Shown here: piece after piece, positions 14,739 through 63,298 of the stretch | How the letters are laid out: every line of letters begins with the position of its first letter | Numbering within the stretch: position 1 is the first letter of the stretch | Sequence record: LR756502.1 | Strand: one strand, 5' to 3' | DNA: 64,000 nt | Notes under the pieces: generated by a model | Database searches by the model: none | Seen by the model: the letters and a program-made list of their open reading frames with translations, nothing else | What the model was told of the DNA's origin: nothing | Position numbers and translations under genes: made by a program

Positions 14739-15011
14739 ATGGAAAGAGCAGTTTGTAAAAATCCTTGGTGTAAAGCAACATTTGAATACAATGAGGAAGA
14801 TATGATAGTTGTTCCTGGTGATGTTAGAGAGTCTAAGATAGATAATATACTAGGTGAAGTTAAAAGAATACCACCACAACAGTGTAAAAAGTGTAAAAGC
14901 TTTGCTAACGATTTAAGTACTGGGGTTGAGTGGAAAGAAAAGAAGTATGAGGGTAGTAGAGATGATGGTATGCCTCACCAAATAAGATATAAAATTAATA
15001 AATTTTTCTAA
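14739..15011 (+). CDS. Zinc-ribbon protein
   Basis: CKNPWC and CKKC; internal RESKIDNIL motif. Confidence 0.6.
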   Translation: MERAVCKNPWCKATFEYNEEDMIVVPGDVRESKIDNILGEVKRIPPQQCKKCKSFANDLSTGVEWKEKKYEGSRDDGMPHQIRYKINKFF

Positions 15012-15860
15012 ATGAAGGCTCACTTTTTTGACATTGATGCACTAATGATAGTTGATAGTCAACCATGGATTGTTAGTAAAAGTAATCCAAATATTCCTAT
15101 TATGAAGATATCACAATCTGACTTTAACTTAAGTAAGAATGGTATTTACAAATCACATGGTAATAAAATAGATTTTAATGGTAAGATTTTCTGGTTATCT
15201 GATAACCTGATGCATAAACTAAAAGTTAAGTCGAAAAACCACAAGGTTGATATTTCTAATTTATCTATATCTATGCAAGAGTTTCTTAACAAAGACATCA
15301 TATCTAAAATAGACTTCAAGTTAAATATGGATGTAATTATGCCTATTAAAAATACCAATGATGATGTTTATGTAATCTGTTCTAGAAACTCTAAGAGAAA
15401 CTATGAAATTATTGTTGAGAAATTAGAGGAATCTCTTAAAGAGAATGGAATTCTAATAAAAAAATACTACTTTATATCTGATACATTCTATAACAGGAAC
15501 CATGATGAGATATCATATAAGAAGGTTAGACTACTTCTACAACATCTTATTGGATATAAAACAGATGGTAATAAATTCATAGATGAAGAACTTGATAAAT
15601 ATGATGAAATAGACTATTATGATGATGATAAACACTCTATTAATTTGGTAAAGGATTCAAATAAAATACTTCAAATATTTCTATCTAAGACTGATTCCGT
15701 TATTAAGTCAAAGATTAAAGATTCTTTAAAATCTAAAGAGAATAAGTTAGTTATAAATGAAGTTACTTCAAATGATCATAATAAGTTTATAACATCCAAG
15801 GTTAATATAGAGTATAGTAATTTGATAAAGGCTTTTGAAAGCTTTAAATTTGGAAAGTAG
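15012..15860 (+). CDS. Hypothetical protein, possible degenerate HAD fold
   Basis: N-terminal HFFDID, later YYDDD. Confidence 0.4.
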   Translation: MKAHFFDIDALMIVDSQPWIVSKSNPNIPIMKISQSDFNLSKNGIYKSHGNKIDFNGKIFWLSDNLMHKLKVKSKNHKVDISNLSISMQEFLNKDIISKIDFKLNMDVIMPIKNTNDDVYVICSRNSKRNYEIIVEKLEESLKENGILIKKYYFISDTFYNRNHDEISYKKVRLLLQHLIGYKTDGNKFIDEELDKYDEIDYYDDDKHSINLVKDSNKILQIFLSKTDSVIKSKIKDSLKSKENKLVINEVTSNDHNKFITSKVNIEYSNLIKAFESFKFGK

Positions 15861-15862
15861 AA

Positions 15863-16480
15863 TTAGTCCTTCTTCTTATTCATCGCATCTTTGATTAAAT
15901 CATTTAACTTTCTGTTATCGATTATTTCACCATCCTCTGATGAGGTTATTGCGTCTATTGACTTTTGTACATCTGGATTATCAGCAACTTCATTTAATCC
16001 TAAATCTTTTCTTAACTCTTTATAGAACTTCTCTAAATCAGTTCTTTGTGTTGATGAAAATTTTGAATTTTCTCTTATTTGTCCAATTGTTTGATTGACA
16101 ACCTCATGCATTCTAGCTGAGTTGTCTCCATTATCAACTTGTCTTAGTTGTGATAAGAAGTTTTTTCTTGTCATTTTTGATAAAAAAATAGACTCTGCGT
16201 AAACAAGAGCATCTTCTTTCATTTTATTTTTTATATAGGCATGTTGTTTTAGCTGAGGGACATCACTTAGGTATAGATCAACAAGAGATTCTAATACATT
16301 CATTGCTTGTTGTGATGATACTGTTAAATCCGCATCATAATCATATATTTCTATCTCTCCTAAATCTGGTAGATCCTCAGGTCTTGCAAGGTGTTGAGTT
16401 ATATCAAACTCTTTACCTTCGGATTGTATTTGTTCAAATTCATCCTGTATTCTATTTTTCTCATTTTCTGATTTTGACAT
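15863..16480 (-). CDS. gp16: Probable terminase small subunit, T4 gp16-like
   Basis: NSARMHEVVNQTIGQI resembles the gp16 SPR..EVF..LMGQM motif; divergent from TerL. Confidence 0.55.
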   Translation of the reverse strand: MSKSENEKNRIQDEFEQIQSEGKEFDITQHLARPEDLPDLGEIEIYDYDADLTVSSQQAMNVLESLVDLYLSDVPQLKQHAYIKNKMKEDALVYAESIFLSKMTRKNFLSQLRQVDNGDNSARMHEVVNQTIGQIRENSKFSSTQRTDLEKFYKELRKDLGLNEVADNPDVQKSIDAITSSEDGEIIDNRKLNDLIKDAMNKKKD

Positions 16481-16497
16481 AGAACCACTATTTTTTC

Positions 16498-16507
16498 AAT
16501 ATATATT
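16498..16507. promoter_or_regulatory. Palindromic bidirectional late promoter
   Basis: AATATATATT lies 17 nt from both the TerS and TerL start codons. Confidence 0.6.
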
Positions 16508-16524
16508 AAAAATTAATTACCCCG

Positions 16525-18663
16525 ATGGCGGTTAAACAAAAACAAGAAATCATCAGACAGATGGTCTTTACAACAAAATTAGTTGATGAGGCCACTGAAA
16601 AGATTAATGATGGTATTGTTGTAAAGAGATATCAGAATCCTTGGTTGAAGAGTGAAGTTGGTCTTAAAAGAGCAGGTGTTTCATTTAAAATGACAACTGA
16701 TGAGCAGCAAGAATATGTAAAATGTGCACTTGATATACACTACTTCACTGAAAAGTATTGTCAAACAAAAACAGAAGATGGTAGTGTTGATAATATACTT
16801 CTGAGAGATTATCAGAAAGAAGTTCTTGATAATTTTATCAGCAATAGATTTAATATATTGATGGCTAGTAGGCAGGTTGGTAAGACAATAATGTCCTCCG
16901 TATTTATATTACATACTATTCTATTTAGTAATGATAAGAATATAATGATAGTAGCGAATAAGGGAGATACCGCAATTGAGATTGTTGATAAGATAAAGGC
17001 CATCTACTCACTATTGCCATTTTTTCTAAAACCAGGTATAAAGTTATGGAACCAAAAATCATTAACATTTGATAATGGTTGTAGAATAAAAACATCCGCT
17101 CGTACAAAGACACCGGCTATTGGTTTTACTATTGACCTTTTATTCCTAGATGAGTTTGCTCACATACCATCTAATATTATTGAGCCATATTATACCGCTG
17201 CATTTCCGGTTACATCAGCTGTTCAGAATTCAAAGATAATTATAACATCAACACCAAATGGTATGAATCTATTTCATAGACTTTTGAGTAATGCTGAGAG
17301 ACCATCCGGTGATCCTCAAAAGAATAACTATAAGGCGATGAGAGTATATTGGTACCAAGTTCCTGGTAGATTCGTTACATATCTGAGACTAAACCCACAT
17401 AAGTTATATGACTATGGTGTTACTAAGGAGGATATCTTTACTTTAATTAATGATACTTGGGGGTCTAAGACAACAGTAGAGATGAAGTTTATATTAGATT
17501 TACAGAAAGATGTTATCTATGTTTATAATAATGAGTTTTGTTCTGATGAGGCAATTAAATCAATGACATTTACTGATAAAGATGGTAACGAGGTTCCTAT
17601 TATGGCTATTGCTGAACTAACAACATGGAAAGAAGAAGCTATAAAGGATATTGGTGGTGAAGATGCATTTAACCAAGAGTATGGACTTAGATTTATTAAC
17701 TCAAGTAAGTCACTTTTAAATGAGAACTTGATAGATGATCTACTTAAACATAAGAGAAATTATATACATGAAAATATACAAGAGTTTGATAGGAAGATAA
17801 GATTTAGTTATGAGGATCTTAAATGGATTGATGATGATGAGGTATTTATGCCTATTAATAGAAAGGAAACAAAGGTAATATTGTCTGTCGATATATCAGA
17901 AGGGCTTGGACAGGATTATTCTATAATTAATATATTTAAGATATCTCCAAAGCCAATAGATCTAATAGATGCTCAGAAGATGTCATATAAGAGCATAGTT
18001 GACTTCTTTCGACTAGAGCAAATAGGTATTTTTAGAAATAACTTTGTTTCTGTTAAGCAACTTTCTGAGTTACTATATATGATTGTCTTTGAGTATTTCT
18101 ACTACGAGAATGTTAAGGTCGTTCTCGAGTTAAATAATTATGGTAATACACTGTTAGCTGAAATGCCACACGTTTTTGATGGTAATAATAACTATGGATC
18201 TTCTATATTCTTCAGATATAAACATAGAGCCGACTCACTTGATGAAAAGGTTGGACTAAAGGTTGGTGAGAATAAGAATCTTATGGTAAAAGACTACCAG
18301 GAGTTAATGCAGAACAAAGGATTTGTTATAACAAACGAGGATAATATTAGAGAAATAACAACATTTGTTAAACACGTAACAACATCAGGTAACATTAGAT
18401 ATGCTGCTGATAATGGTCATGATGATACAGTTATGACTGTTGTTAATACCACAAGTATATTTGCTAAGAGTGATTTCAGGGAAATTGTTGAAGATTATGC
18501 TAATAAAATGGTTGATAAATCATTTATGACATATGTAAATGAATGTTTAAAAACAATGGAGTATGTTGAGGGTGTTGATTATAGTCAAGTATTGAAGATA
18601 AGGAGGCAACAGATGAACAGGTATAAAGGAAATTCTAATAATAAAAATTGGTTTGATAGATAG
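16525..18663 (+). CDS. gp17: Terminase large subunit
   Basis: LRDYQ, ASRQVGKT (Walker A), LFLDEFAH (Walker B), TSTPNG, FNQEY, VDISEG, HDDTVM. Confidence 0.95.
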   Translation: MAVKQKQEIIRQMVFTTKLVDEATEKINDGIVVKRYQNPWLKSEVGLKRAGVSFKMTTDEQQEYVKCALDIHYFTEKYCQTKTEDGSVDNILLRDYQKEVLDNFISNRFNILMASRQVGKTIMSSVFILHTILFSNDKNIMIVANKGDTAIEIVDKIKAIYSLLPFFLKPGIKLWNQKSLTFDNGCRIKTSARTKTPAIGFTIDLLFLDEFAHIPSNIIEPYYTAAFPVTSAVQNSKIIITSTPNGMNLFHRLLSNAERPSGDPQKNNYKAMRVYWYQVPGRFVTYLRLNPHKLYDYGVTKEDIFTLINDTWGSKTTVEMKFILDLQKDVIYVYNNEFCSDEAIKSMTFTDKDGNEVPIMAIAELTTWKEEAIKDIGGEDAFNQEYGLRFINSSKSLLNENLIDDLLKHKRNYIHENIQEFDRKIRFSYEDLKWIDDDEVFMPINRKETKVILSVDISEGLGQDYSIINIFKISPKPIDLIDAQKMSYKSIVDFFRLEQIGIFRNNFVSVKQLSELLYMIVFEYFYYENVKVVLELNNYGNTLLAEMPHVFDGNNNYGSSIFFRYKHRADSLDEKVGLKVGENKNLMVKDYQELMQNKGFVITNEDNIREITTFVKHVTTSGNIRYAADNGHDDTVMTVVNTTSIFAKSDFREIVEDYANKMVDKSFMTYVNECLKTMEYVEGVDYSQVLKIRRQQMNRYKGNSNNKNWFDR

Positions 18664-21029: not shown

Positions 21030-21584
21030 ATGAAGCATATTAGACAATTTGAAAGCTATCGTAATAGAAAACACAGAGAAGAGATTATTAGAGAATCAGT
21101 TCTTCAAGTTAATGATATCTACAAAGTAAAAGCAATGATTGACATTCCTAAGTCACTTATCAATTCTTATGTTAAGAAGGTAAAAGAAATAGGTGGTCAG
21201 GACTTAAGACAGTTTTTTGGTGATTATGATCTTGCTGAGGAAATTGTTAAGTATATAACATTAAACAACTTGGATGCTGATAAAATACCAGCTAATGCAT
21301 TGATGGGTGGTCCCGCTCAAGCACAAGCTCCACAAGCACAAACACAACAAGCTCCACAAGCACAAACACAACAAGCTCCAGAAGCACAAGCAGCACCGGC
21401 TCCAGAAGCACAAGCAGCACCAGCTCCAGAAGCACAAGCAGCAACAGCTCCAGAAGCACAAGCTCCACAAGTTCAGGTTCAAACTCAAACTGAAGGTGGT
21501 GAGAATGTAGGGGAATTTGAAGAGCCTAATGTTCAAACTGAAAAAGAGAAAGAAGAAGAAGGTGAAGAAGAACTTCCACTTTAG
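21030..21584 (+). CDS. Capsid-targeting-motif protein with Ala/Pro/Gln/Glu repeats
   Basis: MKHIRQFESY; APQAQTQQ and APEAQAAP repeats; acidic tail. Confidence 0.65.
   Translation: MKHIRQFESYRNRKHREEIIRESVLQVNDIYKVKAMIDIPKSLINSYVKKVKEIGGQDLRQFFGDYDLAEEIVKYITLNNLDADKIPANALMGGPAQAQAPQAQTQQAPQAQTQQAPEAQAAPAPEAQAAPAPEAQAATAPEAQAPQVQVQTQTEGGENVGEFEEPNVQTEKEKEEEGEEELPL
21316..21480 (+). repeat. Coding tandem repeats (GCTCCAcaagcacaa / GCTCCAgaagcacaa units)
   Basis: Direct repeats visible in DNA, in frame. Confidence 0.9.
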
Positions 21585-21649: not shown

Positions 21650-22264
21650 ATGAAATACATTAAGACCTATGAGAACCATAATAATTCAACACTTATAATT
21701 GTTGATGTTCAGAAGTCATTTAGGAAATACTTCAATGAAATGTATCTTAATGAACTTAAGAAATACTGTAAAAACTTCCAAAATGTTTACCAAATTTGGG
21801 ATAATCATGTCGATGGTAAGAATGTTGATAAGGATTATCTATACCATAGTTCACCTGATATACCAGTACATGAGGATCTGTATGATTTTCCAAACCAAAA
21901 GGATATAATTGAGAAGAGATATAACTACGATGTTGATGTTGATTTCTATAAGAAGATATTAAGTAAGGAAACATATAAAGAAATAAAATCTAAAGAGAAA
22001 AAAAGTCTATTAAAGAAGGGTGATCTTTTTAGGACAAGTGAGGGTACCGCTATTGCTTATATAGGAAATAATCACCAATGGACACATGTTCCTAAGAAGC
22101 TACTCAGTCTTTTGGAGTCACTAAGGGGTATGAATGTTGTTATTGTTGGTGGTGCTGATGGTGAATGCTTAGAAGATATATTTGTGGTTGCTGAATCTAT
22201 TGGTGTTATTGTTAAGAGGGACTGGAAGTTCATTTATACCGCATCTCATTGTCCAATTCGATAA
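21650..22264 (+). CDS. Isochorismatase/cysteine hydrolase family protein
   Basis: TLIIVDVQKSF, IIEK, IVGGADGECL (D-K-C triad); N-terminus MKYIKTYEN. Confidence 0.75.
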   Translation: MKYIKTYENHNNSTLIIVDVQKSFRKYFNEMYLNELKKYCKNFQNVYQIWDNHVDGKNVDKDYLYHSSPDIPVHEDLYDFPNQKDIIEKRYNYDVDVDFYKKILSKETYKEIKSKEKKSLLKKGDLFRTSEGTAIAYIGNNHQWTHVPKKLLSLLESLRGMNVVIVGGADGECLEDIFVVAESIGVIVKRDWKFIYTASHCPIR

Positions 22265-22298: not shown

Positions 22299-22742
22299 AT
22301 GAGATATCTAAAAACATTTGAAAGTTTTGATTACGATACAATAGATGCTAATGAGGATGAGTATCTATATGTTCAAGAATCGCAGATTCCAAACTCCGGT
22401 AGTGGTTTATTTACAGCGATAGATATAGGTAAGGATGAGATAGTGTCAAAATTTATTGGTGAGGTTATATCAGAGGAAGAGTCACAAATAAGAGTTGATA
22501 ATGATGATGATCAATATTTTATGAGTCTCCCGTCAGGTGAAATGTTTGATTGTAAAAGAACAGATTGTTTCGCCAAATATGCAAATGATGCTGAAGGACT
22601 TCCCACAAAATTCAAAAATAATACATTTATAGGAATGGATGATGATGATAATGTTGTTTTAATAGCCAAGAGAGATATTAAAGCTGGTGATGAGATATTT
22701 ACTGGATATGGTAAAGAATATTGGGGTAAACACGGTATATAA
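22299..22742 (+). CDS. SET-domain methyltransferase
   Basis: GSGLFT, KYANDA, AKRDIKAGDEIFTGYG..YW; N-terminus MRYLKTFESF. Confidence 0.88.
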   Translation: MRYLKTFESFDYDTIDANEDEYLYVQESQIPNSGSGLFTAIDIGKDEIVSKFIGEVISEEESQIRVDNDDDQYFMSLPSGEMFDCKRTDCFAKYANDAEGLPTKFKNNTFIGMDDDDNVVLIAKRDIKAGDEIFTGYGKEYWGKHGI

Positions 22743-22752: not shown

Positions 22753-23847
22753 TTAAAGATTATCTATAAACTTATAAAGCTTTTTAACATATTCTCTTCT
22801 CTTATATTCTGGATTTGTCATAGTATATACAACAAATGAAAAGTAATTCATTTTCTCAATTAATAACTCCTTAGAGATATTACCTCCAACATACCTGAAC
22901 TCAACATAATTATTATCAAGTTTTGTAATATTAAATCCGAAGTTTTTGTGACCAAGCTCTTTAATCTTCCCTGTAAGAAAACTGTTTAATGTTTCTTCTG
23001 TTTCTTTTAGATTGTTTAAATCAATTGACCTCTTCAACTTTTCTATTACTTTACTATCTAGTGATTTTATTGCTGGTATTAAAGATCCACAGAAGTGACT
23101 ATTCATTCTCCATGTCATATCTTTGAATGTTAGAGGCGGTGCATCACCCTCGTTAAAATCATTTAACATAAGTAATCCCTTTATTGGGTTCCATTCAGCG
23201 TTATTATCATTTACTCCAATGTTTATATGTAGTCCAGTTTTTTCTGTAAATTTCCAATAGCTTTGCTTTTCTAAATCAGAATAAAAGTCGTTGATCATCT
23301 CTGTTCCCTCGGAAAGACCTACTAGATATGTTTTTGGCTTTATTTCTATACCTCTGTCCAATGTAACATCTTCAACTAAATCTATCTTTTTGGACCATTT
23401 CTTTATAAAGTTTGGTAGGTATTTTTTTGTTTGTTTTGTCATGTATAGTAGATCTGATTCAGCTATTTGACTCATTACGGCTGACTTAATAAACTTTACA
23501 ATTTCCCTTTCCCTATTACTTTCGTAATTATCTAGGTTGAATATTTTGACCATGTCTTCTTTTATAGTACCATCCTCATTCGCATCTACCAGTGATTGTA
23601 TAATGCTTTTAACTAGAGTTTTTTCAGATCTAGTCCTTATATCCATTTCGTGTTTTGTGCTACTTATTATATCATCAATATCATCTTCATCTTCCAGAAT
23701 ACTAAAGTCCATTTTAATGTTTGACTTATCATCCGTCTCTATCTCAAACTCAAATGATACTGTGAAATATTTATCCATGTTCTGGATAAATGATATATCC
23801 TTTGGATTTACTTCTTCAAAAAGAGAAAATTTAATAATGTGTTTCAT
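22753..23847 (-). CDS. Putative amidoligase (COOH-NH2 ligase type 2)
   Basis: SFEFEIE, GIEIKP, TGLHINIG, YVEFRYVGG; N-terminus MKHIIKFSLFEE. Confidence 0.75.
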   Translation of the reverse strand: MKHIIKFSLFEEVNPKDISFIQNMDKYFTVSFEFEIETDDKSNIKMDFSILEDEDDIDDIISSTKHEMDIRTRSEKTLVKSIIQSLVDANEDGTIKEDMVKIFNLDNYESNREREIVKFIKSAVMSQIAESDLLYMTKQTKKYLPNFIKKWSKKIDLVEDVTLDRGIEIKPKTYLVGLSEGTEMINDFYSDLEKQSYWKFTEKTGLHINIGVNDNNAEWNPIKGLLMLNDFNEGDAPPLTFKDMTWRMNSHFCGSLIPAIKSLDSKVIEKLKRSIDLNNLKETEETLNSFLTGKIKELGHKNFGFNITKLDNNYVEFRYVGGNISKELLIEKMNYFSFVVYTMTNPEYKRREYVKKLYKFIDNL

Positions 23848-24398: not shown

Positions 24399-24428
24399 AA
24401 AAAGAGTCAGATTATTCTGACTCTTTTT
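24399..24428. terminator. Bidirectional terminator
   Basis: AAAAAGAGTCAG-ATTATT-CTGACTCTTTTT between convergent genes. Confidence 0.8.
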
Positions 24429-24900
24429 CTTTTAATATATCATCAATTGCCTCATCTCTATGAATCTGTTTATAGTCAATAAACTCTCTAACCGTTTCTA
24501 AATCCGCAGAGACTGAGGAATTTTTTGAATTTATGACCCAATTTGATTCGTCCTTTAGACTAATTTGCCATAGATATATTGGGTTACCAAGATCCTCAAT
24601 TTGAACTCCATCTTTAATACAAAATTGGTTTTTCAATAAGTCATCTTTAACTGTAAAGTATCCTAATTTTGCATCATCATAAGATCTAACCCATATCTTC
24701 CATTTAGTAATCGATTGCTCAATGGTTTCACCATCTTTAAATATATATCCATGAATGACCGGATGTAGCCAGTCATTCAAAGAGGATATACTATCATCAG
24801 AATATACCTTAGCTTGTGTTGGATCCTGTGATTTACTCCAAAAGGTATCACACTTGAAGTGTTTTTTACCTCCCATCTCTACAAATAATAAAGCTCTCAT
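24412..24900 (-). CDS. Hypothetical protein with C-terminal RDxxIxxIL motif
   Basis: Ends HRDEAIDDILKEKESE. Confidence 0.6.
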   Translation of the reverse strand: MRALLFVEMGGKKHFKCDTFWSKSQDPTQAKVYSDDSISSLNDWLHPVIHGYIFKDGETIEQSITKWKIWVRSYDDAKLGYFTVKDDLLKNQFCIKDGVQIEDLGNPIYLWQISLKDESNWVINSKNSSVSADLETVREFIDYKQIHRDEAIDDILKEKESE

Positions 24901-31493: not shown

Positions 31494-31494
31494 A

Positions 31495-48416: not shown

Positions 48417-49202
48417 ATGAAATATGATGATATAGTTGATGGTATCAATTTTAATAGAATTAAACTATTTGAGAGTCATGAATTAGCGATCAGTAATAGT
48501 AATCTAAAAAACCCAACATCTTTTGGATTAAGTGTTCCTTTGGTGGATCCACAGTCACTTGTAAATGATATTGGTATTAATGCAGAAGATAATATATTTG
48601 GTATAATAAGACGAGAAGTTTCACAATCAGTAAATAGTATAATTTTCTCTAAACTATTTGCAACTAGAAAGTTTGAGTACTTGGATTTATCTAAATCTGG
48701 TGGGATATCTGGATCTACATATAAGGATCAAAGAAGTTTATATAATCTTATAGTTAGTTCCAATGAAGGATATAGTAATATTATATCTAATGGATATGTT
48801 GCTACATCTCTACAGGATTTACCGGAGTATATACTTACGGGTAGAAATATTCAACGGGATAATTATAATTTCAATGATTATGGTCGTTTGTCTATTCCCA
48901 AAGATATGAGTTTTAATGGACCTGATAGTATAAATATATGGGTTGATCCATATATGACGTATAATGATACTAGATTAGTTATGTTTAGTAATGTTGAATT
49001 TAATTTTACAAATTTGTGTTCCGCTGTTGTTAATAATGCAACATTTACCCCATCAATTAAAATTCAATATGATTTGTCGGTTGATGTTGGTGATTCAAAG
49101 GTAATATTTGTCATTGATAATGAGTCATCTGATGTTTTCCGAAAGTATAAATCACTTCAGCGTGATATAAAAATAGATAATGTTCTTGATGAAGAAGACT
49201 AG
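48417..49202 (+). CDS. Truncated major-capsid paralog
   Basis: IIRREVSQSVNSIIFSKLF, ISNGYVATSLQD and IWVDPYMTYNDTRLV match gp23 ILVNELSQTISKQIVAKIF, ITNGGLAAALQD and IYVDPYMKYNDNRIV. Confidence 0.8.
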   Translation: MKYDDIVDGINFNRIKLFESHELAISNSNLKNPTSFGLSVPLVDPQSLVNDIGINAEDNIFGIIRREVSQSVNSIIFSKLFATRKFEYLDLSKSGGISGSTYKDQRSLYNLIVSSNEGYSNIISNGYVATSLQDLPEYILTGRNIQRDNYNFNDYGRLSIPKDMSFNGPDSINIWVDPYMTYNDTRLVMFSNVEFNFTNLCSAVVNNATFTPSIKIQYDLSVDVGDSKVIFVIDNESSDVFRKYKSLQRDIKIDNVLDEED

Positions 49203-51685: not shown

Positions 51686-53026
51686 ATGGATAAAACATAT
51701 AATAGTGAAATGGGTAAATTAGTTACATTAAATGGAGTAGATGATCAAAAGCTACTTGATGAAATTATAGACAATGAAATAGTTGTCATTGAAGATGTTC
51801 AGGGTAGTAAAATTTGGGTTAATTGGGATGGTGAAAAATTTTCAATAAAGCCAAAGTCAATAAGCAATGATCCTATTAATTTAATAGACCTTGCTATGCA
51901 AAACTACTATAACCCAGCTATAAACTACCTTGACTCATTGGATAGTAGGATTAAATCACTTTTGAATAAAAAGTGGTCATTTTGCTTTGAATATTTCCCT
52001 GATAATCAACCAGCTAATATTGAATATCAGAAAATGCCAAAAAATAATCTGGTTCTTACTTCAATATGTAAAAATGGTAAGTATGATTATACACTAGAAG
52101 AACTTGACGAATATGCAAGACTATTTGATGTTGATATTATACCAGTTGTTTTTAAAGGTAAGCTCTCTCAAAGAATGGTTGAGGCCATTAAATATTTTAT
52201 AAACACTGGTGAAGATGACTTGGAGTATGTATTTGGTGAAAAGTCATTTGCATTTTTCTTCTATAAGATATTAAACCCTTCTTCTGATAGTTCTTTTTTG
52301 ATGGATGGTGATAACTTTCAGGATAACTTAGAAAAGCTTATTATAAAAGTGCAGGGTAAAGATATTTCATTTGAAATACTAAACCCTCTTTATAAGAGAG
52401 TTAGTGATACCAACTCAACCGAATTTGTTGAAATATATACACTTATACTTATAAACTTTCTTAACTTCTGTCAATCCATTGATATGGATGATATAAAGCT
52501 AAAGGGTGAATCAAAGGACGAGTCATATATTTATCTAATCTGTAAACTATATAACATATATGTCTCCGAGGTAAAGGATGACTTGATAAATTTTGATTTT
52601 ATCATACCTGAATTTTTTGACAAGGATAAGTTCAAAATTAACAAGGAGTTAATATCAAATAAGCTAACAAAGGAATATATTGATGAGAGTGATAAGCTTG
52701 AGTATATATTTAAAGTTATACTTGGATCATTTAATAGAAAAAGAAAAAAGCCACTTGGTGTTTTTAGTGATAGTACGGTTATTACATTTAATGCATTCGT
52801 TGATAGTATTAATGTGTATATCGAGAAATATCTAAATAGAATTCATGAGGTTGAATTAACAAGAGCTGGTCTTCTAGACTTTGGTGACTTTTTTGAGATT
52901 AAGTATGATCAAGATGCTGAAGGTGATGTTTATCCTGATGTATATGGCGAGTTTGAAAAAGAACCAACTGAGTCTAAGAAAAAGGGCAAAGGTGGTAAGT
53001 ATCCATCAAAAGCTCCATCCAAGTAG
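51686..53026 (+). CDS. RNA-ligase-like fold with degenerate motif I
   Basis: VIEDVQGSKIW in place of EKxDGS; FCFEYF; IIPVVFKG. Confidence 0.45.
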   Translation: MDKTYNSEMGKLVTLNGVDDQKLLDEIIDNEIVVIEDVQGSKIWVNWDGEKFSIKPKSISNDPINLIDLAMQNYYNPAINYLDSLDSRIKSLLNKKWSFCFEYFPDNQPANIEYQKMPKNNLVLTSICKNGKYDYTLEELDEYARLFDVDIIPVVFKGKLSQRMVEAIKYFINTGEDDLEYVFGEKSFAFFFYKILNPSSDSSFLMDGDNFQDNLEKLIIKVQGKDISFEILNPLYKRVSDTNSTEFVEIYTLILINFLNFCQSIDMDDIKLKGESKDESYIYLICKLYNIYVSEVKDDLINFDFIIPEFFDKDKFKINKELISNKLTKEYIDESDKLEYIFKVILGSFNRKRKKPLGVFSDSTVITFNAFVDSINVYIEKYLNRIHEVELTRAGLLDFGDFFEIKYDQDAEGDVYPDVYGEFEKEPTESKKKGKGGKYPSKAPSK

Positions 53027-53187
53027 TGAAAATCATCGATTTGAATTTAACATCTGTTGTTGTTCAATGCAAAACAGTTAAAATTCGCTCTAAATGGACT
53101 AGAGTGATGGCTCATGATATTTATGTGATGGGTAGGAAAAATTCCTTTAGGAAAGATAAAATTCGTAAAATTTTAGATTCTATATAA
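53026..53187 (+). CDS. 53-aa ORF not in ORF track, with RKDKIRKIL motif
   Basis: GTG overlaps the preceding TAG; ends SFRKDKIRKILDSI. Confidence 0.55.
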   Translation: MKIIDLNLTSVVVQCKTVKIRSKWTRVMAHDIYVMGRKNSFRKDKIRKILDSI

Positions 53188-54607: not shown

Positions 54608-55138
54608 ATGATAGGATTGGACCAATCAACATCTTCTTATATTATAATCTCGACAAATAATGGTATTGAAAGTACTCTTTATGGTCGAGACTATTCTATT
54701 ATCCCTATAAAGGAGTTCTATAAGGGATCCTATGTTGACTATATCATATCTTATGGTCGTGTCGATAATGGTAATCTTAGAAAAGATGTTTTATTTTTAT
54801 TAAATGAGTTTAACCAGGATTCGGCTATTATAAAATATACTGGAGAAAATATAATTAGAAAGATATACCGAGATGGATCTGAAGTACAGGTTGATATAGA
54901 TTTATATAGTACCGACTTTGACAAAGAGTCATACATTTACAATGGGTATTCATTCTCTTTTACCGAAACAAAGAAGTATTTCTTCCCTACAAAAAAGGAA
55001 GACATTAAGATAGGGATGATAGTTGAATTTTTTAATAATAATAAATGGGTTGAGAAGAAAGTCTATAACCCAGATTTGGAATATGATAATCTGTATAAAT
55101 TACTTATTAAGTATAATAAGGTAAGAATTCCTATTTAG
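54608..55138 (+). CDS. Hypothetical protein
   Basis: 176-aa ORF with late promoter. Confidence 0.55.
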   Translation: MIGLDQSTSSYIIISTNNGIESTLYGRDYSIIPIKEFYKGSYVDYIISYGRVDNGNLRKDVLFLLNEFNQDSAIIKYTGENIIRKIYRDGSEVQVDIDLYSTDFDKESYIYNGYSFSFTETKKYFFPTKKEDIKIGMIVEFFNNNKWVEKKVYNPDLEYDNLYKLLIKYNKVRIPI

Positions 55139-55887
55139 TTTATTTTAAACCAAACAAAATTTTTATAGAATGTCATATTAGTTTCACATATGTTATATCT
55201 ACCACCATCAACATAATCAATCATCATTAGTCCGCCCCCACTGTTATCGTTTTCTATTCGTCCTATAATTACCTTATCTGGATCAATTCTACTTGAAATG
55301 ATAATTTTAGATCCGTTAAAACTACCAATTATACTTGGGTTATTACTTGCCGTCTCTGGTGAAGTATAAGTATTTAGTAGTGTTTTAAATATTTTTTGTG
55401 TTTCAACTCCAGCAATTATTATATTCGCTGGTCCTTTCCTGGATAACTGTGCGATCATGTTTGATAGACCAGTCAATCTAGCTACAATCTTCCGTAGTGT
55501 ATCGTTATATGTTATTGTAGAAAGATTACAGGTTGATAGATAAGAGTGTTGTCCTTTTGTGTTTGATTCAATGTAGTCAATTACATCATTCCAAGTATCG
55601 ATGTTTGATTTGAAGTTGGTGTTGGCTAGAACATTCATTGATTTTACCTTAACTGAGAATTCTGGATAGATCATCATTTCATCTGATCCAAGGTGAAATC
55701 GATTATCATATTCTTCCACTTTGTCTTCAAGAATAACATCAAGAGCAAGATTTCTATTTTTTTGAATTATAGATCTCTTATACTCATCACTACTACTATC
55801 TTCTGATTCAATGTAGTTTATAACAGATTTTGGTTGATCTACCTTTATATAATTACATATTATTTTAATATCCTCTTTACTTATCAT
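55135..55887 (-). CDS. Second divergent major-capsid paralog fragment
   Basis: LRKIVARLTGLSNMIAQLSRKGPANIII and IGSFNG..KVIIGR match gp23 RKLITKIAHASNYIATEGRVGPAQYLI and VGTIG..RIVVGR. Confidence 0.65.
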   Translation of the reverse strand: MISKEDIKIICNYIKVDQPKSVINYIESEDSSSDEYKRSIIQKNRNLALDVILEDKVEEYDNRFHLGSDEMMIYPEFSVKVKSMNVLANTNFKSNIDTWNDVIDYIESNTKGQHSYLSTCNLSTITYNDTLRKIVARLTGLSNMIAQLSRKGPANIIIAGVETQKIFKTLLNTYTSPETASNNPSIIGSFNGSKIIISSRIDPDKVIIGRIENDNSGGGLMMIDYVDGGRYNICETNMTFYKNFVWFKIN

Positions 55888-56765: not shown

Positions 56766-57170
56766 ATGAATAAAATTGGAAGAGTGGAGAAAATAAGTTT
56801 TCCAGATCTTAATATACTTTCACTAGACGCAAAGGTTGATACTGGAGCATATGGTACAGCTTTGCATGTTGATGGTATACGAGCAAGAGCTGGTAAATTA
56901 TCATTTTGGATAAATGATCCATCTAACAGATTGTACTTTGATAGATATAGAGTAATTAATGTTAGAAACTCTTTTGGTAAAAAGCAAAAAAGATATTCAA
57001 TTATGACAAGAGTTGTAGTTGGTGATTCAACATATAAGATATTTATATCACTTACAAACAGAAAGGATATGAAGTATCCTGTGTTGATTGGTCGTAGATT
57101 TCTATATAAGTTCAATTATATAGTTGATGTTAGAAAAAAACATTTAAATGATAAATCTAAAAAGGTGTAA
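56766..57170 (+). CDS. RimK-associated retropepsin-like protease
   Basis: IGRVEKI, AKVDTGAYGTALH, MKYPVLIGRRFL. Confidence 0.82.
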   Translation: MNKIGRVEKISFPDLNILSLDAKVDTGAYGTALHVDGIRARAGKLSFWINDPSNRLYFDRYRVINVRNSFGKKQKRYSIMTRVVVGDSTYKIFISLTNRKDMKYPVLIGRRFLYKFNYIVDVRKKHLNDKSKKV

Positions 57171-57696
57171 CTATATTACTGGAGATCCTCAATCAATATC
57201 GTTTGGTGTTGCTCGGATACTCGACTATCTTGAACTAGATGGTAGAAATATAGTATTACTAACTCTAGGTAAGAGAAATATAAGACAAAGTCTAACCCCA
57301 CTTTCATATTTTGTAAATAATAAGATTGAATATAATAATATCGGTGATTTTGGAAATATATTTTCTGATACATCAGTACTATTTAGGGTTGATCTTATTG
57401 TTGTTGATTTTTGGCATTTGAAGACTTCTGAGATTATAGACTATAAGGATATATTAGATAGTTCTAATATTGATTATATTATAGTGGCCAAAGAATACCA
57501 CTATAAGGACTCTGATGATGTTAATGATTATCATATAAAGAAGGAATCATCAGCCACAAGCATTGGGTTTCATCAACCTGATTCCAACTATATTATAACA
57601 AATAAAGTAGATGGTTGGTCAAGTGACCTTGATAGTATTGTAAAATCACATGTAAGAGATAAGAAGATTGATGGTATAATTGGTACTAAAGAATAG
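57148..57696 (+). CDS. Hypothetical protein with C-terminal RDKKIDGII motif
   Basis: Possible degenerate RecA-like fold (LIVVDFW). Confidence 0.5.
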   Translation: MINLKRCNYITGDPQSISFGVARILDYLELDGRNIVLLTLGKRNIRQSLTPLSYFVNNKIEYNNIGDFGNIFSDTSVLFRVDLIVVDFWHLKTSEIIDYKDILDSSNIDYIIVAKEYHYKDSDDVNDYHIKKESSATSIGFHQPDSNYIITNKVDGWSSDLDSIVKSHVRDKKIDGIIGTKE

Positions 57697-57764: not shown

Positions 57765-58949
57765 ATGCGAATTAGACGAAAATTTCTTCAATTAACAAGT
57801 TGGACTTATCCTTATGGAACTGAGTATACACTTGAGAGTTACCTACCAAAAGGATTTCAAAGAGATGAAAATGAGAACTATTATATTGTAGTTGGTAATA
57901 ATCCAAGTACAATGTTTACTTGTCATTTAGATACAGCTTGTTCATATCAGGAAAAAGTAACACATGTACCCAGTGGTAATTTTATTAGAACTAATGGTAA
58001 GACAATTTTAGGATCTGATGATAAGGCTGGTATGACAGTTATGTTATATATGATTGAGAAAAAGGTTCCTGGTATATACTACTTCTTTACTGGTGAGGAA
58101 GTTGGATGTATTGGATCTGGTGATTTGGCAGATCAGTGGTTTGAGTTAAAAATGTTTAATGATATAACTAAAATTGTTTCTTTTGATAGAAGGGGTACTG
58201 GTTCTGTAATTACTCACCAATTATATGGTAGATGTTGTTCAAATGAGTTCGCTGAAGAACTATCAAAGAGATTAAACGATACTGATGAGGGCATTAATAT
58301 GTCTCCGGATAATACTGGTATAATGACAGATTCTGCTAAGTTTGTTGATATGGTTCCGGAGTGTACTAACATTTCAGTTGGATATTATAAAGAACATACT
58401 GTTGATGAGTGTCAAGATATTGAATTTTTGCAGAGGTTGTGTAAGGCTGTTGTTAAAATTGACTGGGAAACACTTCCGGTTAAGAGAGATCCGACCGAAG
58501 AAGAAGAGGAAAGTTATATAGATACTTATGCAAATTGGAGTAATGGAAAATATAAGTACTCAATAGATGAAGATGGATATGAGTTCTTGGAGGAAAACTA
58601 TACATATGTTCAGTATTCTACACCAACTGGTAAGGATGTAAAGAAAATGCTTATTTCAAAGGATAGAGTTTCTGAGGAAAAGAAATATATATACAACTGG
58701 GTATTCTCAACCGGGTTATATAGTGATATGACTGGTATGGATTGGAATGGTCATTCATTGTATATTGCAAATGCGAAAGGAAATCTTGAATTTGTTGGTA
58801 ATAGAGTTGAGCTTATGGATTATGTCCCTGAGTTAAAGACTGTTCCAACAAGATGTCTTTCTGATAAACCTAGGAAGCACGTTAAGGATATAGACACTGA
58901 AGTTACTGACATGAGTGATGATAGGTTTATGGAAGAGTATATGTATTAA
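57765..58949 (+). CDS. Second M20/M28-family metallopeptidase
   Basis: CHLDTA, LGSDDKAG, GEEVGCIGS, SFDRRG, TNISVGYYKEHT. Confidence 0.82.
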   Translation: MRIRRKFLQLTSWTYPYGTEYTLESYLPKGFQRDENENYYIVVGNNPSTMFTCHLDTACSYQEKVTHVPSGNFIRTNGKTILGSDDKAGMTVMLYMIEKKVPGIYYFFTGEEVGCIGSGDLADQWFELKMFNDITKIVSFDRRGTGSVITHQLYGRCCSNEFAEELSKRLNDTDEGINMSPDNTGIMTDSAKFVDMVPECTNISVGYYKEHTVDECQDIEFLQRLCKAVVKIDWETLPVKRDPTEEEEESYIDTYANWSNGKYKYSIDEDGYEFLEENYTYVQYSTPTGKDVKKMLISKDRVSEEKKYIYNWVFSTGLYSDMTGMDWNGHSLYIANAKGNLEFVGNRVELMDYVPELKTVPTRCLSDKPRKHVKDIDTEVTDMSDDRFMEEYMY

Positions 58950-58959
58950 ACCAAAAACT

Positions 58960-59868
58960 TTAATGTAATTTAGAACCTACGAAATCTTCGTAGGTTTCTT
59001 TTTTTACAACGTGAATGCAATCATCGATGGAGAATGAAAGCGAGAATCGATCAATGTCGTCATGAATAAAAACACCATCAGACCCATCTCCAAAGGAATT
59101 ATATGTACCAATAACAACTTTAATTAAAGAAGATCTCAGTGGTTGTACATCCGCGCGATCCAGCTTTAATATCTTGAGACTCTCACTGGTCACTAATACT
59201 ACTTTATCCTCATCTTCAAGACTATTTCTCTCATCTTTAATTTCATTTAATATTTGGAAGTTAACCTTGTCACTTTTTAGTGACTTAGCAATGGACGACA
59301 TATCCATATTTGTAATTACTTGATTAGTTGTTGTCTCTATTATATTCTTACTAGTATATTCATCCTTGTAGTCTTCTATTAGATCACATGTTGTGAAGTC
59401 AGCATCACCACTTACTGTCTTATATTTATGATGTAGGTCACCGAAAACCTTATCTATTGCATTCTCGTATGTTTTTCTAACTTCTTCCTCTATCTCAGTT
59501 GATATGTATAATAACCAATCTGGTGCATCATTAGAAGCCTTTTCTAAAACCTTTTCGGGCTCAGCAAAATCATTATATGTTTCTTTTTTAACTATATGGA
59601 AAGCATGTTCTATTGTATAAACAGTATCGTTAGTCGAAGTTCCTAATACATAACAATTATCATTTTGATCAAACCATCTTTCTAATTTAAATTGATATGT
59701 ATCATATCCACCGCTGAAATATGTAGCTAAAACTTCATCACCCTCCATAAGAGAATTTCTCTCATCATCTAATTTAGTAAGCACAGAAAGGTCAACCTCA
59801 TCATTTACGCACTTGAAGTCGTGTGATTGAACATATAGTTCATTGAACTGTTTCCACTTTTTGATCAT
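58960..59868 (-). CDS. Tandem-duplicated-domain protein with capsid-targeting-like N-terminus
   Basis: MIKKWKQFNE; DERNSL and H[IV]VKKETY.DF each occur twice. Confidence 0.6.
   Translation of the reverse strand: MIKKWKQFNELYVQSHDFKCVNDEVDLSVLTKLDDERNSLMEGDEVLATYFSGGYDTYQFKLERWFDQNDNCYVLGTSTNDTVYTIEHAFHIVKKETYNDFAEPEKVLEKASNDAPDWLLYISTEIEEEVRKTYENAIDKVFGDLHHKYKTVSGDADFTTCDLIEDYKDEYTSKNIIETTTNQVITNMDMSSIAKSLKSDKVNFQILNEIKDERNSLEDEDKVVLVTSESLKILKLDRADVQPLRSSLIKVVIGTYNSFGDGSDGVFIHDDIDRFSLSFSIDDCIHVVKKETYEDFVGSKLH
58972..59005 (+). terminator. Intrinsic terminator overlapping the 3' end of the opposite-strand gene
   Basis: AACCTACGAA-ATC-TTCGTAGGTT followed by a U-run. Confidence 0.75.
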
Positions 59869-60546: not shown

Positions 60547-60550
60547 TGTT

Positions 60551-61333
60551 ATGAAAGAGAAGGAATTACTATGGAACATACTAAATTCTACTAATCCTGC
60601 AGAGGAATTGGATGGACTTGATAATGCTGGTGTTTTAGAACATCTACTTCCTGAGTTAACTAAACTAAGAGGAGTTGATATTGTTGATGGACAAGGACAC
60701 AAAGATAACTTTTTACACACTTTACAAGTAGTTAAACAAACTGCTGAGGTTTCTATAAACCCTTGGCTACGTCTTGTTGCTATTCTACACGATGCTGGTA
60801 AGGCTCCTACAAAAAGATTTGATAAAGAGAAAGGTTGGACATTTCAAAACCACGAACTTGTTAGTTCAAGAATGGTTAATGATATCTTTAAGAGATTTGA
60901 CTTAGATAGAACAAAAATAGAATATGTTTCTAAGTTAGTTGAATACCACGGTATCGCCAAAGAGTTGACCAAGAAAGGTGTTACTGACTCAGCTATTCGT
61001 AGATTCTCTACTGAGTTGGGTGATTGGGTGGATGATATGTTATTATTTTGTAGATGTGATATGACCACAAAATCTGCAGCTAATCGTCAAAGATTTCAAG
61101 CTGAACTTGATGGACTTAAATCAAGAATTGAAGAAGTTCGCAAATCAGATGAGGCTTCTAAATGGAGAGCACCTATCGATGGTAACTTCATTATGAAGGA
61201 ACTTGGTATCACACCTGGTCGTAGACTTGGTCAAATAAAATCTGAAATTGAAAGAGCTATTAAGGCTAATGAGATTGAAGATAACTTTATGAGTGCTTAC
61301 AATTACTTACTGAAAATTAAAGATAAATTCTAA
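60551..61333 (+). CDS. Stand-alone HD/tail half of CCA-adding enzyme
   Basis: LLPEL..L.GV...HKDNFLHTLQV, LHDAGK.PTKRF...GWTF.NHE, PIDGN.IM..LGI.PG..LG; no GGxVRD/DxD head domain. Confidence 0.82.
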   Translation: MKEKELLWNILNSTNPAEELDGLDNAGVLEHLLPELTKLRGVDIVDGQGHKDNFLHTLQVVKQTAEVSINPWLRLVAILHDAGKAPTKRFDKEKGWTFQNHELVSSRMVNDIFKRFDLDRTKIEYVSKLVEYHGIAKELTKKGVTDSAIRRFSTELGDWVDDMLLFCRCDMTTKSAANRQRFQAELDGLKSRIEEVRKSDEASKWRAPIDGNFIMKELGITPGRRLGQIKSEIERAIKANEIEDNFMSAYNYLLKIKDKF

Positions 61334-61527
61334 TGAATATTTTATTGGAATTAAATAATAAGATTGTAGAGTTGAAGAGTATTGGAATTAATGACTCTCA
61401 AATTAAAGAAGAGAGTCTTAGATTCCTAAAAGATATTCTAAAAGAGTCTTCCTTTCAAGATAGAAAAGACTTTTGGTTACACATTGATAGAAATAAAAAA
61501 TTAGATGAATTACTCAGTGGTAAATAA
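61333..61527 (+). CDS. Small protein with RNKKLDELL motif
   Basis: 64-aa ORF. Confidence 0.55.
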   Translation: MNILLELNNKIVELKSIGINDSQIKEESLRFLKDILKESSFQDRKDFWLHIDRNKKLDELLSGK

Positions 61528-62023
61528 CATAGTTAGTCATTTAACAAATGTCTATGGGTTTGAACTCGTTTCTCCGTCTATTCCGAGAAACGAGTTTCAG
61601 CGTTTAAAGAGATCCTTTTACTTATTCATATTAAGTAGTGTGAGTGAGAAACTATTCTATTTCCTTAGAGATAAGGTATCTCCTATAAAATTTAAACTTG
61701 AAAGACCAGATGGTGAAGTTTGGATGAGAAGAAGATTCAGTGTTGAGGCTGGATCTATGTGTGAGATTGAAATAAGACCAATTCCTCCAGAGGCTGCTAT
61801 CTATGTGATTGATGATAAGGGCATTTATACACCTGATTATCGAGATAATTTTAAGATTAATATTTGGTATCCAATTATTTATAGTGAAAAAACTGGAGAG
61901 GCTAAGTCTTTTCCAGTTAATTCAAAAAGATTTGATGAGTGTGTTGATGCTCATTTTTCTGACTTGCCTCAACTGAGAGAGTCATTAAGAGATTATAAAT
62001 TAAAAAAACTTTTCAATGAATAA
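61505..62023 (+). CDS. Hypothetical protein with RDYKLKKLF motif
   Basis: 172-aa ORF. Confidence 0.55.
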   Translation: MNYSVVNNIVSHLTNVYGFELVSPSIPRNEFQRLKRSFYLFILSSVSEKLFYFLRDKVSPIKFKLERPDGEVWMRRRFSVEAGSMCEIEIRPIPPEAAIYVIDDKGIYTPDYRDNFKINIWYPIIYSEKTGEAKSFPVNSKRFDECVDAHFSDLPQLRESLRDYKLKKLFNE

Positions 62024-62372
62024 AAAAATTCACTGTATCATAACCAAATTGATTAGTACTACTACAATAATAGTATCTATACTCTTCACCCCATTTCAAT
62101 ATTACTATTGTGGTTTGAATTTCACCTGGGTTAATTTGACCATCTTGATATTAATGTCATTTATGTTCTTTTCGTTTGGGAGGTTTCAACTTCTAAAAAC
62201 AAATAACCCACTAAGTAGATATAATCCATTCTCATTACACCCTAGATGGAAAACAAGAATGGATTATAGTATGGAAGAGAAACCTGGTCAACTATATCAA
62301 CTTGATGATCCAACAGAAGAAGAGATATTGCAGTTGAATAGAGATAAAAAAATAAATCAGTTACTAAAATAA
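62016..62372 (+). CDS. Two-TM membrane protein with RDKKINQLL motif
   Basis: Hydrophobic N-half; motif at C-terminus. Confidence 0.55.
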   Translation: MNKKIHCIITKLISTTTIIVSILFTPFQYYYCGLNFTWVNLTILILMSFMFFSFGRFQLLKTNNPLSRYNPFSLHPRWKTRMDYSMEEKPGQLYQLDDPTEEEILQLNRDKKINQLLK

Positions 62373-62716
62373 TGTCGGATAGTTTTTTTGATAGCTTTAA
62401 GTCTGATGGTGTTCCAAAATCAGTCAATAATACCAAAGTAGTGCACTTTAAGAAGGAAGACTATGATGTTTATATTGGTCGTCTACCAGGTGGTAAATAT
62501 AATAAGTGGGCTTATCCTAAGGAGTTGAGAGATTCTTTTCCAAAGGGGACACCAAGAAAACAGATAGTAGATGCTTATAGAGACTATGTTCTCTCTAAGC
62601 CCGAATTAATTAAGGATTTATGTGAGATAAAGGATAAAGTTCTTGGTTGTTGGTGTAAGCCATCAAAGTCTTGTCATGGTGATATACTTGTTGAATTGAT
62701 ATCAAAATATTGCTAA
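62372..62716 (+). CDS. DUF4326 family protein
   Basis: YDVYIGR, KWAYP, KVLGCWCKP..CHGDIL. Confidence 0.82.
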   Translation: MSDSFFDSFKSDGVPKSVNNTKVVHFKKEDYDVYIGRLPGGKYNKWAYPKELRDSFPKGTPRKQIVDAYRDYVLSKPELIKDLCEIKDKVLGCWCKPSKSCHGDILVELISKYC

Positions 62717-62720
62717 AATT

Positions 62721-62748
62721 AAACTAAAATAAACATCTATCATATAAA
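62721..62748 (+). promoter_or_regulatory. AAAC-N18-TATAAA promoter (P-loop/thyA operon)
   Basis: Exact spacing. Confidence 0.55.
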
Positions 62749-62752
62749 AAAC

Positions 62753-63298
62753 GTGTTTAATAAAAACTTTAATATAATCTTAGGTAAAAGATCAAGTGGT
62801 AAAACATACCTTCTTTGGGAAATTTCAAAGATTTTTAAATCACTTGGATATAAGATATGTTTTATCGGACTATCTAATGAATTTACTGAGGGTTATGTTG
62901 GTGATGATTTTCTAAAACATTTTGATCTTCATCGTAATCTTACAGATATTACTGGGAATAATGACATTAAGATGTTGGAGCTTGTAAAGGAGATAGTTGA
63001 GAGAGATAAGTTTGACTTTATATTTATAGATGATATGCATCTTAATGAAAGGATACATAAACTGATATCTGAAATTGAAGTTAGAAAAGTTTGCACATCA
63101 AACAGTATTAGTTCATCCAAGCAATCTCCAATTAGCTTTGATAAAGATTTTGATACCTATAGTATAAATAATTCTTATGATGATGAAACAATGAAGTCAG
63201 TGTCAATGATACAATATAATGGTTTATTGGTTGGTGAAATTAAAGAATTCCTACTCTCTTTAACAAGAGAATTAAAAATTAATAATGTATTAAAATGA
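62753..63298 (+). CDS. P-loop protein with C-terminal RELKINNVL motif
   Basis: [14 protein letters not shown]. Confidence 0.6.

Follow-up and report, generated by a model that had tools for sequence, protein, structure and literature searches.

Why should one short peptide recur at the very end of many proteins that show little relation to one another? The question is raised by a 64,000-nucleotide stretch of DNA (the window) whose sequence is that of bases 186001-250000 of LR756502.1. This record is an unannotated 642,428-bp metagenomic genome labelled 'uncultured phage', probably among the largest in the huge-phage set of Al-Shayeb et al. 2020 and within their Mahaphage clade. The window has a G+C content of 31% and contains no N runs. 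The original prediction, made from its letters, described a portable, mostly C-terminal peptide motif on about 16 unrelated open reading frames (ORFs), which we call the C-terminal tag.

All 16 of the predicted peptides are in frame. They score 12.0-25.0 bits in a 13-column weight matrix that covers positions -4 to +9, counted with the motif arginine as position 1, and that we used with a cut-off of at least 12 bits. The numbers attached to the peptides had been given as motif positions and are instead ORF start or end coordinates. The division into 13 C-terminal and three internal copies holds, with 12 of the former lying 1-8 residues before the stop codon and one lying 17 residues before it, and with the internal copies 52, 98 and 197 residues away. 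Two small ORFs that the motif was said to reveal also exist, at 31447-31632 and 53026-53187. The sites, in window coordinates and with lengths in amino acids (aa), are as follows.

24433..24459, minus strand: RDEAIDDIL, 6 residues before the stop of ORF 24412-24900 (162 aa); 20.7 bits
25327..25353, minus strand: RELKINQLL, 2 residues before the stop of ORF 25318-25782 (154 aa); 22.9 bits
31579..31605, plus strand: RIYKINKIL, 8 residues before the stop of the small open frame 31447-31632, absent from the 60-aa ORF list; 16.5 bits
46685..46711, plus strand: RDNIIENIL, 1 residue before the stop of ORF 46436-46717 (93 aa); 17.2 bits
47372..47398, plus strand: RDLSLRKLF, 3 residues before the stop of ORF 47147-47410 (87 aa); 12.0 bits, the weakest C-terminal example
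49161..49187, plus strand: RDIKIDNVL, 4 residues before the stop of ORF 48417-49202 (261 aa, predicted HK97 fold); 22.7 bits
49378..49404, plus strand: RDFKIKKVL, 17 residues before the stop of ORF 49180-49458 (92 aa); 20.1 bits
53149..53175, plus strand: RKDKIRKIL, 3 residues before the stop of the small ORF 53026-53187 (53 aa); 14.8 bits
57655..57681, plus strand: RDKKIDGII, 4 residues before the stop of ORF 57148-57696 (182 aa, predicted RecA/KaiC-like); 22.1 bits
61489..61515, plus strand: RNKKLDELL, 3 residues before the stop of ORF 61333-61527 (64 aa); 23.2 bits
61988..62014, plus strand: RDYKLKKLF, 2 residues before the stop of ORF 61505-62023 (172 aa); 17.7 bits
62340..62366, plus strand: RDKKINQLL, 1 residue before the stop of ORF 62016-62372 (118 aa); 25.0 bits
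63266..63292, plus strand: RELKINNVL, 1 residue before the stop of ORF 62753-63298 (181 aa, weak P-loop ATPase matches); 17.0 bits
14826..14852, plus strand: RESKIDNIL, internal, 52 residues before the stop of ORF 14739-15011 (90 aa); 18.7 bits
38589..38615, minus strand: RDILINNIL, internal, 98 residues before the stop of ORF 38292-38714 (140 aa); 14.1 bits
55729..55755, minus strand: RNLALDVIL, internal, 197 residues before the stop of ORF 55135-55887 (250 aa); 12.8 bits, a weak copy that could be of chance origin

About one in six of the phage proteins, mostly of unknown function, carries this shared C-terminal peptide. We covered LR756502.1 as 13 overlapping 50-kb pieces plus the window and called ORFs greedily in each, which yielded 993 ORFs of at least 50 aa; some of these are spurious at piece borders, so that the tagged fraction of 16% is approximate. 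The loosest pattern that covers the predicted peptides, R...[IL]..[ILV][LIF], marks 11 of the 79 ORFs in the window within their last 25 residues, as compared with 0.73 after shuffling of the same termini, and its C-terminal rate there is 21 times its rate in protein interiors. Across the genome, this pattern occurs 214 times and lies within 8 residues of the C terminus in 124 ORFs. The tails that follow it in these 124 are far shorter than chance, with a mode of 1 residue and a length of at most 5 in 115. With the weight matrix, the expected genome-wide enrichment over composition controls is borne out: 161 of the 993 C termini are positive, compared with 0.15 in shuffles and with 1.7 sites predicted from the interior rate, an excess of about 95-fold. 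No matrix match was found at the N termini of the 993 ORFs. Interior windows above the cut-off number 35, against 2.75 in shuffles. The roughly 30 internal copies above chance often precede an acidic or polar linker and further protein, as in LR756502.1 256301-257968 (555 aa, motif at residue 246) and 366984-367580, and may represent fusions of a tagged protein with a downstream domain.

The main form of the tag is R-[DEN]-x-K-[IL]-[NDSE]-x-[ILV]-L, followed by 0-8 residues to the stop. About 44 ORFs have a variant that the weight matrix exposed, R-[DN]-x-K-L-x-x-[LI]-G-[IL]-COOH, and the two endings interchange among homologues within one family. Positions that the loose pattern leaves free are also constrained in its 124 C-terminal bearers: position 2 is D, E or N in 105 and position 4 is K in 75, with position 6 biased to N, D, S, E or K and position 10 to residues of helix-cap type (K, D, N, G). 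A weaker signal precedes the arginine, with K at -4 and S at -3, and none is seen in these bearers beyond about -8. The extended consensus is accordingly [K/hydrophobic]-S-x-hydrophobic-R-[DEN]-x-K-[IL]-[NDSE]-x-[ILV]-L with a polar cap residue and a short tail. With 9-13 informative positions, few of them fixed, and with its occurrence on unrelated proteins, the peptide has the character of a short linear motif.

The proteins that bear the tag are small (median 112 aa, range 50-622) and diverse. After removal of the tag, the 124 bearers fall into 120 BLAST clusters with few pairs detectably related, and the six that match Pfam each match a different family. The bearers in the window show no BLAST similarity to one another and essentially no Pfam or PHROG matches. 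In one bearer elsewhere, a complete riboflavin kinase domain (residues 2-128) is extended by 85 residues, with the tag at their end. Modelling with AlphaFold from homologue alignments assigns ORF 48417-49202 an HK97 capsid-like fold, with T4 head proteins and encapsulins as best matches; the protein shares 30% identity with the major capsid protein (41452-43167) across 99 residues. The same approach gives ORF 57148-57696 a RecA/KaiC-like core with a degenerate P-loop (GDPQSIS); its 88 metagenome homologues are all without a name. The cluster count and the differing folds together indicate that the tag is portable across unrelated proteins. The original prediction was thus right about their unrelatedness and far too low in number, about 161 ORFs being tagged genome-wide as opposed to 16.

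In both models the tag is predicted to form the distal half of the terminal helix, in agreement with the helix that had been proposed, and model confidence drops there (from 74 to 46 and from 55 to 40). Low model confidence combined with high conservation is typical of an intermolecular contact, and because confidence falls at a segment that is among the most conserved of these proteins, we view the predicted helix end as a candidate contact of this kind.

Tagged genes are arranged in tightly packed same-strand runs and tandem arrays, with a median gap of -1 and with 58% overlapping the next gene. Among tagged genes, 17% have no same-strand gene downstream, and terminator-like hairpins follow some of them. 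Bearers are scattered genome-wide and are densest at 0-120 kb and 600-642 kb; of the 55 ORFs between 620 and 642 kb, 20 are picked out by the loose pattern by itself, and that interval also holds more than 20 LG[IL]-COOH sites. Membrane segments are not enriched among bearers (12 of 161 versus 72 of 630).

Does selection act on the peptide or on the DNA that encodes it? Arginine codons vary at position 1 (AGA 93, AGG 22, CGT 7, CGA 2), as the original prediction had noted in favour of protein-level selection, and their usage does not depart from that of the genome (p=0.36). Synonymous codons also occur in genome proportions at Asp2, Asn2, Ile5, Asn6 and Asp6. A-ending codons are mildly over-represented at positions 4, 8 and 9. 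Selection acts on the peptide and not on the DNA, because codon usage is genome-like and because 17% of tagged genes have no same-strand gene downstream.

The tag is retained in a related genome. LR745206.1 (634,780 bp, metagenomic) is the only related GenBank phage record, and we sampled it in four 50-kb pieces with the matrix trained on LR756502.1, which makes the test out-of-sample. The tag is present on 55 of its 325 ORFs and in 8 of 54,458 interior windows. Few bearers have a detectable homologue in the sampled parts; where orthologues could be paired, the tag is kept in 14 of 14 orthologues of bearers, at a mean identity of 38%, versus 2 of 106 orthologues of non-bearers. In two orthologous families the motif is 77-88% identical, compared with 31-46% for the remainder, placing the tag among the most conserved segments. 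For the family of ORF 48417-49202, the values are 88% in the motif across 27 homologues and 31% elsewhere.

A back-translated pattern scan of IMG/VR, which is a sample and not a census, gave at least 122 matches. Among the matches listed, 67 lie in a long open frame with its stop at most 8 codons away (in one of the 67 a stop falls inside the motif), and 62 of 68 tagged loci encode relatives of LR756502.1 proteins. Tagged ORFs recur at these listed loci, for example 9 of 22, 8 of 38, 8 of 25 and 7 of 13, and the tag is kept in 58 of 63 homologues of bearers versus 8 of 404 others; this orthologue set was selected through the motif and is therefore biased, unlike the LR745206.1 test. A tblastn search for cultured relatives with the HK97-fold bearer against 50,697 GenBank phage records returned two metagenomic genomes only. 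As judged from these homologue sets, the tag is a feature of the whole phage clade.

How does this label relate to the capsid machinery of the phage? A T4-like morphogenesis module lies inside the window.

6321-10172: tail sheath
16525-18663: large terminase
36545-38260: gp20-like portal
39272-41371, plus strand: gp21-like prohead protease, 699 aa
41452-43167: gp23-like major capsid protein

The genome also carries an N-terminal tag, MK[HY]LKxYK[IL]FE, which we defined by a hand-made pattern; about 88 ORFs carry it, and their median length is 171 aa. In our view this tag recalls the T4 capsid targeting sequence (CTS). The window includes these examples.

10231-10791, minus strand: N-tagged ORF
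10788-13181, minus strand: N-tagged ORF
21030-21584: N-tagged ORF
21650-22264: N-tagged ORF
22299-22742: N-tagged ORF
22753-23847, minus strand: N-tagged ORF
26797-27231, minus strand: N-tagged ORF
27276-27608: N-tagged ORF
30806-31009: N-tagged ORF
35232-36002: N-tagged ORF
36007-36480: N-tagged ORF

The two tags avoid one another. Given 88 ORFs with the N-terminal and 161 with the C-terminal tag, one would expect about 14 to carry both; a single ORF does, through a spurious match (Fisher p=2.6e-6). The claim that the C-terminal motif never accompanies the capsid tag therefore stands, as does the description of it as a second tag, distinct from the N-terminal T4-CTS-like one.

The separation extends to the DNA upstream of the genes. 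An unbiased k-mer search of upstream regions recovered a motif, TAATATATA / AATATATAA, that is sharply placed 10-40 nt before the start codons of 194 ORFs genome-wide. It precedes the ORFs that start at 16525 (terminase), 36545 (portal), 41452 (capsid protein), 43253 and 43975, and is probably the late promoter of the phage. Classes of promoter are assigned here from sequence alone. The share of genes with the TAATATATA motif directly upstream is 57% among N-tagged and 1% among C-tagged genes; among untagged genes it is 25% for large and 15% for small ones. Scored at run heads, the motif is present in 69% of N-tagged, 27% of untagged and 7% of C-tagged runs (p=6.6e-8). ORF 48417-49202, the bearer with the predicted HK97 fold, likewise lies outside the runs that follow this motif. 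Several heads of tagged runs have TATATTTG, which we take to fit the Bacteroidota -7 element TAnnTTTG. The association of TAnnTTTG with tagged arrays is a weak trend (21% versus 13%, p=0.057), and for this reason we limit the claim to 'not late' and do not call the genes early: by their upstream motifs, tagged genes are outside the structural-gene, presumably late, class.

Some neighbouring features of the module deserve mention in their own right. The protease-family match of the prohead protease homologue at 39272-41371 (plus strand) is limited to its first ~400 of 699 residues, so by sequence comparison a large additional C-terminal part is present; the protein is more than three times the length of T4 gp21. 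Shortly after the capsid gene, 43975-45351 (plus strand) matches PHROG 4191 ('peptidase') and forms a paralogue pair with 57765-58949 (plus strand), at 51% identity over 243 residues. The region 45979-46357 (plus strand) has by eye a look of transfer-messenger RNA (tmRNA), with pairing of 5' GGGGGUG and 3' CACCUCC in which the third pair is G-U, an unusual would-be T-loop and an internal frame at 46118-46165 that reads ALQNNMISVGDLAVA-stop; ARAGORN and Rfam gave no detection, and the resemblance is unconfirmed.

What, then, could the C-terminal tag do? We propose that it is a docking or sorting handle, a helix carried under protein-level selection by about 160 unrelated, non-late accessory proteins and read by a putative common receptor, and we give this proposal about an even chance of being correct. 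The tag would fold as a helix of ~13-17 residues, about three turns, with a cap. A single receptor would read its hydrophobic face (positions 5, 8, and 9 or 10) together with Arg1, the D, E or N at position 2 and Lys4, and the phage could in this way handle a large and fast-changing set of non-late accessory proteins as one class. Because such a receptor would serve ~160 clients, it would most plausibly be a general handling machine, whether a protease with an adaptor, a chaperone or a compartment scaffold.

Several points weigh against this proposal. Docking, including on the single hub that the original prediction proposed, is read from the anatomy of the peptide, and binding is putative. 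About 160 clients for one receptor would be unusually many for a phage, and the ~30 internal copies beyond chance indicate that a free C terminus is not strictly needed. The exclusion from the late class leans on a late-promoter label for TAATATATA that is itself our interpretation, and the TAnnTTTG trend at tagged arrays is weak.

The competing explanations meet this same body of evidence in different places. The tag could be a second capsid-loading signal, with the helix binding the procapsid interior or the scaffold so that tagged proteins are packaged and injected. The T4-like head module, with its portal, gp21-like protease and gp23-like capsid protein, provides a setting; some bearers lie inside it, one is itself predicted to have the HK97 fold, and C-terminal helices act as capsid-binding handles in the P22 and 80-alpha scaffolds and in encapsulin cargo peptides. 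We nevertheless consider this unlikely, because the structural-gene promoter-like motif precedes 1% of tagged as opposed to 57% of N-tagged genes and because the tag and the N-terminal tag are mutually exclusive. The CTS-like tag on ~88 ORFs already follows that motif, and the C-terminal peptide does not resemble encapsulin cargo peptides. An equally small chance goes to a generic stabilising end-cap, a helix that needs no dedicated receptor and aids folding or solubility, or shields new small proteins from tail-specific proteases of the host. Bearers that are small, lack recognisable families and have few detectable homologues in the sampled LR745206.1 would suit it, as would the helix-capping features (S at -3 and G, N, D or K after L9). 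Such a cap, however, needs no near-invariant arginine, no acidic or amide residue at position 2 and no Lys4 kept down to 25-40% identity, nor would it shun N-tagged proteins or genes behind the structural-gene promoter-like motif. A membrane-targeting amphipathic helix of the MinD/FtsA type, in which a net positive charge, a large hydrophobic or aromatic face and few acidic residues would be expected, is disfavoured, because acidic residues are conserved (D or E at position 2, and common at 6-7) and membrane segments are not enriched in bearers.

Sliding-clamp binding would account for the C-terminal position and for the h-x-x-h-h spacing of [DEN]-x-x-[IL]-x-x-[ILV]-L, both of which match the PIP-box consensus as generally known. 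Yet glutamine comes first in 3 of the 124 bearers, aromatics are rare (F at the last position in 7 of 124, none at position 8), and Pfam finds no polymerase, ligase or nuclease among the 124 bearers and the 10 largest; ~160 clamp clients would in any case be implausible. Because the glutamine and aromatics are missing and replication enzymes are lacking among bearers, we judge a clamp motif very unlikely. A nucleic-acid signal at gene ends (a promoter, coupling element or recombination junction) that is translated incidentally, or a termination effect of the nascent peptide, would draw on the tight packing of tagged genes and on the mild excess of A-ending codons. It is highly improbable in the face of genome-like synonymous codons at most positions, of the 17% of tagged genes without a same-strand downstream gene, some with terminator-like hairpins, of the ~30 internal copies and of two peptide endings that interchange in orthologues. 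Hidden common ancestry, with one hugely diverged paralogous family of which the last helix alone is recognisable, gains something from the tandem arrays and from the few bearer pairs detectably related. Against it stand the 120 clusters from 124 proteins, lengths of 50-622 aa, the presence among bearers of three or more unrelated folds and of an entire cellular enzyme domain, and a conservation signal that ends ~8 residues upstream of the arginine, and we assign it scarcely any weight. A composition artefact of K/I/N/L-rich termini in an AT-rich genome, whose 31% G+C goes together with proteins rich in I, K, L, N and D, has a negligible chance of being the explanation: per-protein shuffles (0.15) and the interior rate (1.7) fall far below the 161 sites observed. 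Composition and chance are rejected on these shuffles, on the interior controls and on the out-of-sample result from LR745206.1.

Returning to the docking handle, what might its receptor be? Clp genes of LR756502.1, all of them outside the window, supply one candidate; coordinates here are those of the full record.

440544-442667, plus strand: ClpC-like double AAA+ unfoldase, 707 aa, with two AAA modules, a UVR motif and a VGF loop, without a Clp N-domain
58607-59281, minus strand: ClpP gene
112095-112817, minus strand: ClpP gene

Both ClpP genes are bona fide, with E-values of 1e-77 and 1e-69 for the pair. By analogy with ClpC, we take the VGF loop to be a ClpP-docking loop. A C-tagged gene lies 4 nt downstream of the second ClpP gene, in an operon-like run with tagged genes. 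The ClpC-like ATPase has a counterpart in LR745206.1 with 84% identity. Among GenBank phages it matches chiefly genes of ClpB/ClpC type, found in faecal contigs and in phage-labelled records of Staphylococcus, Listeria, Enterococcus and others, and we take these to be largely host-derived sequence. This AAA+ protease system, the ClpC-like protein with two ClpP proteins, is our preferred candidate for the tag receptor, at a low probability, and we put it forward as a tentative lead and not as a finding. In the fuller and doubtful version of this idea, the virus would run its own targeted proteolysis, with more than 150 fast-evolving non-late proteins docking through the C-terminal helix on the N-domain-less unfoldase and its ClpP pair. 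The tag could then be a degron that times the removal of tagged proteins, or a tether by which each tagged protein would deliver a bound host target for degradation. ClpP in jumbo phages has earlier been noted as a likely anti-host device (PMC7824862), and PMC6873191 presents SPO1 gp53 as a phage early protein, adaptor-like, that acts on ClpCP.

The Clp candidate has its own difficulties. Its basis is gene presence, the C-terminal position of the tag and precedent. The known Clp degrons are, to our knowledge, unlike the tag motif. A nonpolar free C terminus of the ssrA kind is present in the LG[IL]-COOH variant (~44 ORFs); most tagged proteins end in polar tails, the main form finishing in 0-8 residues of K, D, N, G, S or E. 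Around ClpC-like genes on 80 IMG/VR contigs, tags are found in the closer relatives only, and none was seen in the flanks of more distant viral contigs, where short flanks are a poor test and make absence uninformative.

Were the proteolysis version true, two mutually exclusive labels would sort about a quarter of the phage proteome. Genes of huge phages are mostly of unknown function, so a label shared by ~160 proteins offers a handle with which to study one class of them, and naming its partner could place a sixth of the proteome in a common pathway. For annotation, the tag flags real small ORFs and marks members of the clade in metagenomes.

Among known systems, the T4 CTS of the internal proteins and Alt is, like the tag, a short portable address label on unrelated, fast-changing phage proteins. 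It differs in its N-terminal position, in its cleavage by the prohead protease and in its link to late expression, whereas the tag is C-terminal (161 C-terminal sites as opposed to 0 N-terminal) and avoids the structural-gene promoter-like motif (1%, an indirect test). One short, often C-terminal helix suffices for targeting in the Rubisco-binding motif of the algal pyrenoid, in encapsulin cargo peptides and in the encapsulation peptides of microcompartments. The tag resembles these compartment-targeting motifs in that a single short helix is common to many unrelated proteins, and differs in that the sequences are unrelated; we know of no compartment for this phage clade. The encapsulin cargo-loading peptide in particular is of G-S-L type and sits beside the shell gene, unlike the tag, which has a different consensus and bearers scattered genome-wide. 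PIP boxes and bacterial clamp motifs share with the tag a C-terminal position and h-x-x-h-h spacing, whereas the tag is missing their defining glutamine at position 1 and aromatic pair at positions 7-8 and occurs on ~160 proteins of unknown function in lieu of replication enzymes. The ssrA tag, the ClpX-binding tail of SspB and SPO1 gp53 (PMC6873191) are also short C-terminal peptides through which many proteins reach one AAA+ protease. Compared by sequence only, the tag shows no resemblance to these peptides; it is predicted to be helical, has conserved charges and mostly ends in polar tails.

No description of the motif was found in the literature searched, and a proteome-scale C-terminal phage label paired with an N-terminal capsid-type label appears to be new. 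Because the N-tagged genes follow the promoter-like motif and the C-tagged genes do not, the pairing suggests that peptide labels serve these phages to sort their proteins at a scale so far undescribed in phages. In concept, the C-terminal tag belongs with peptide sorting signals and degrons.

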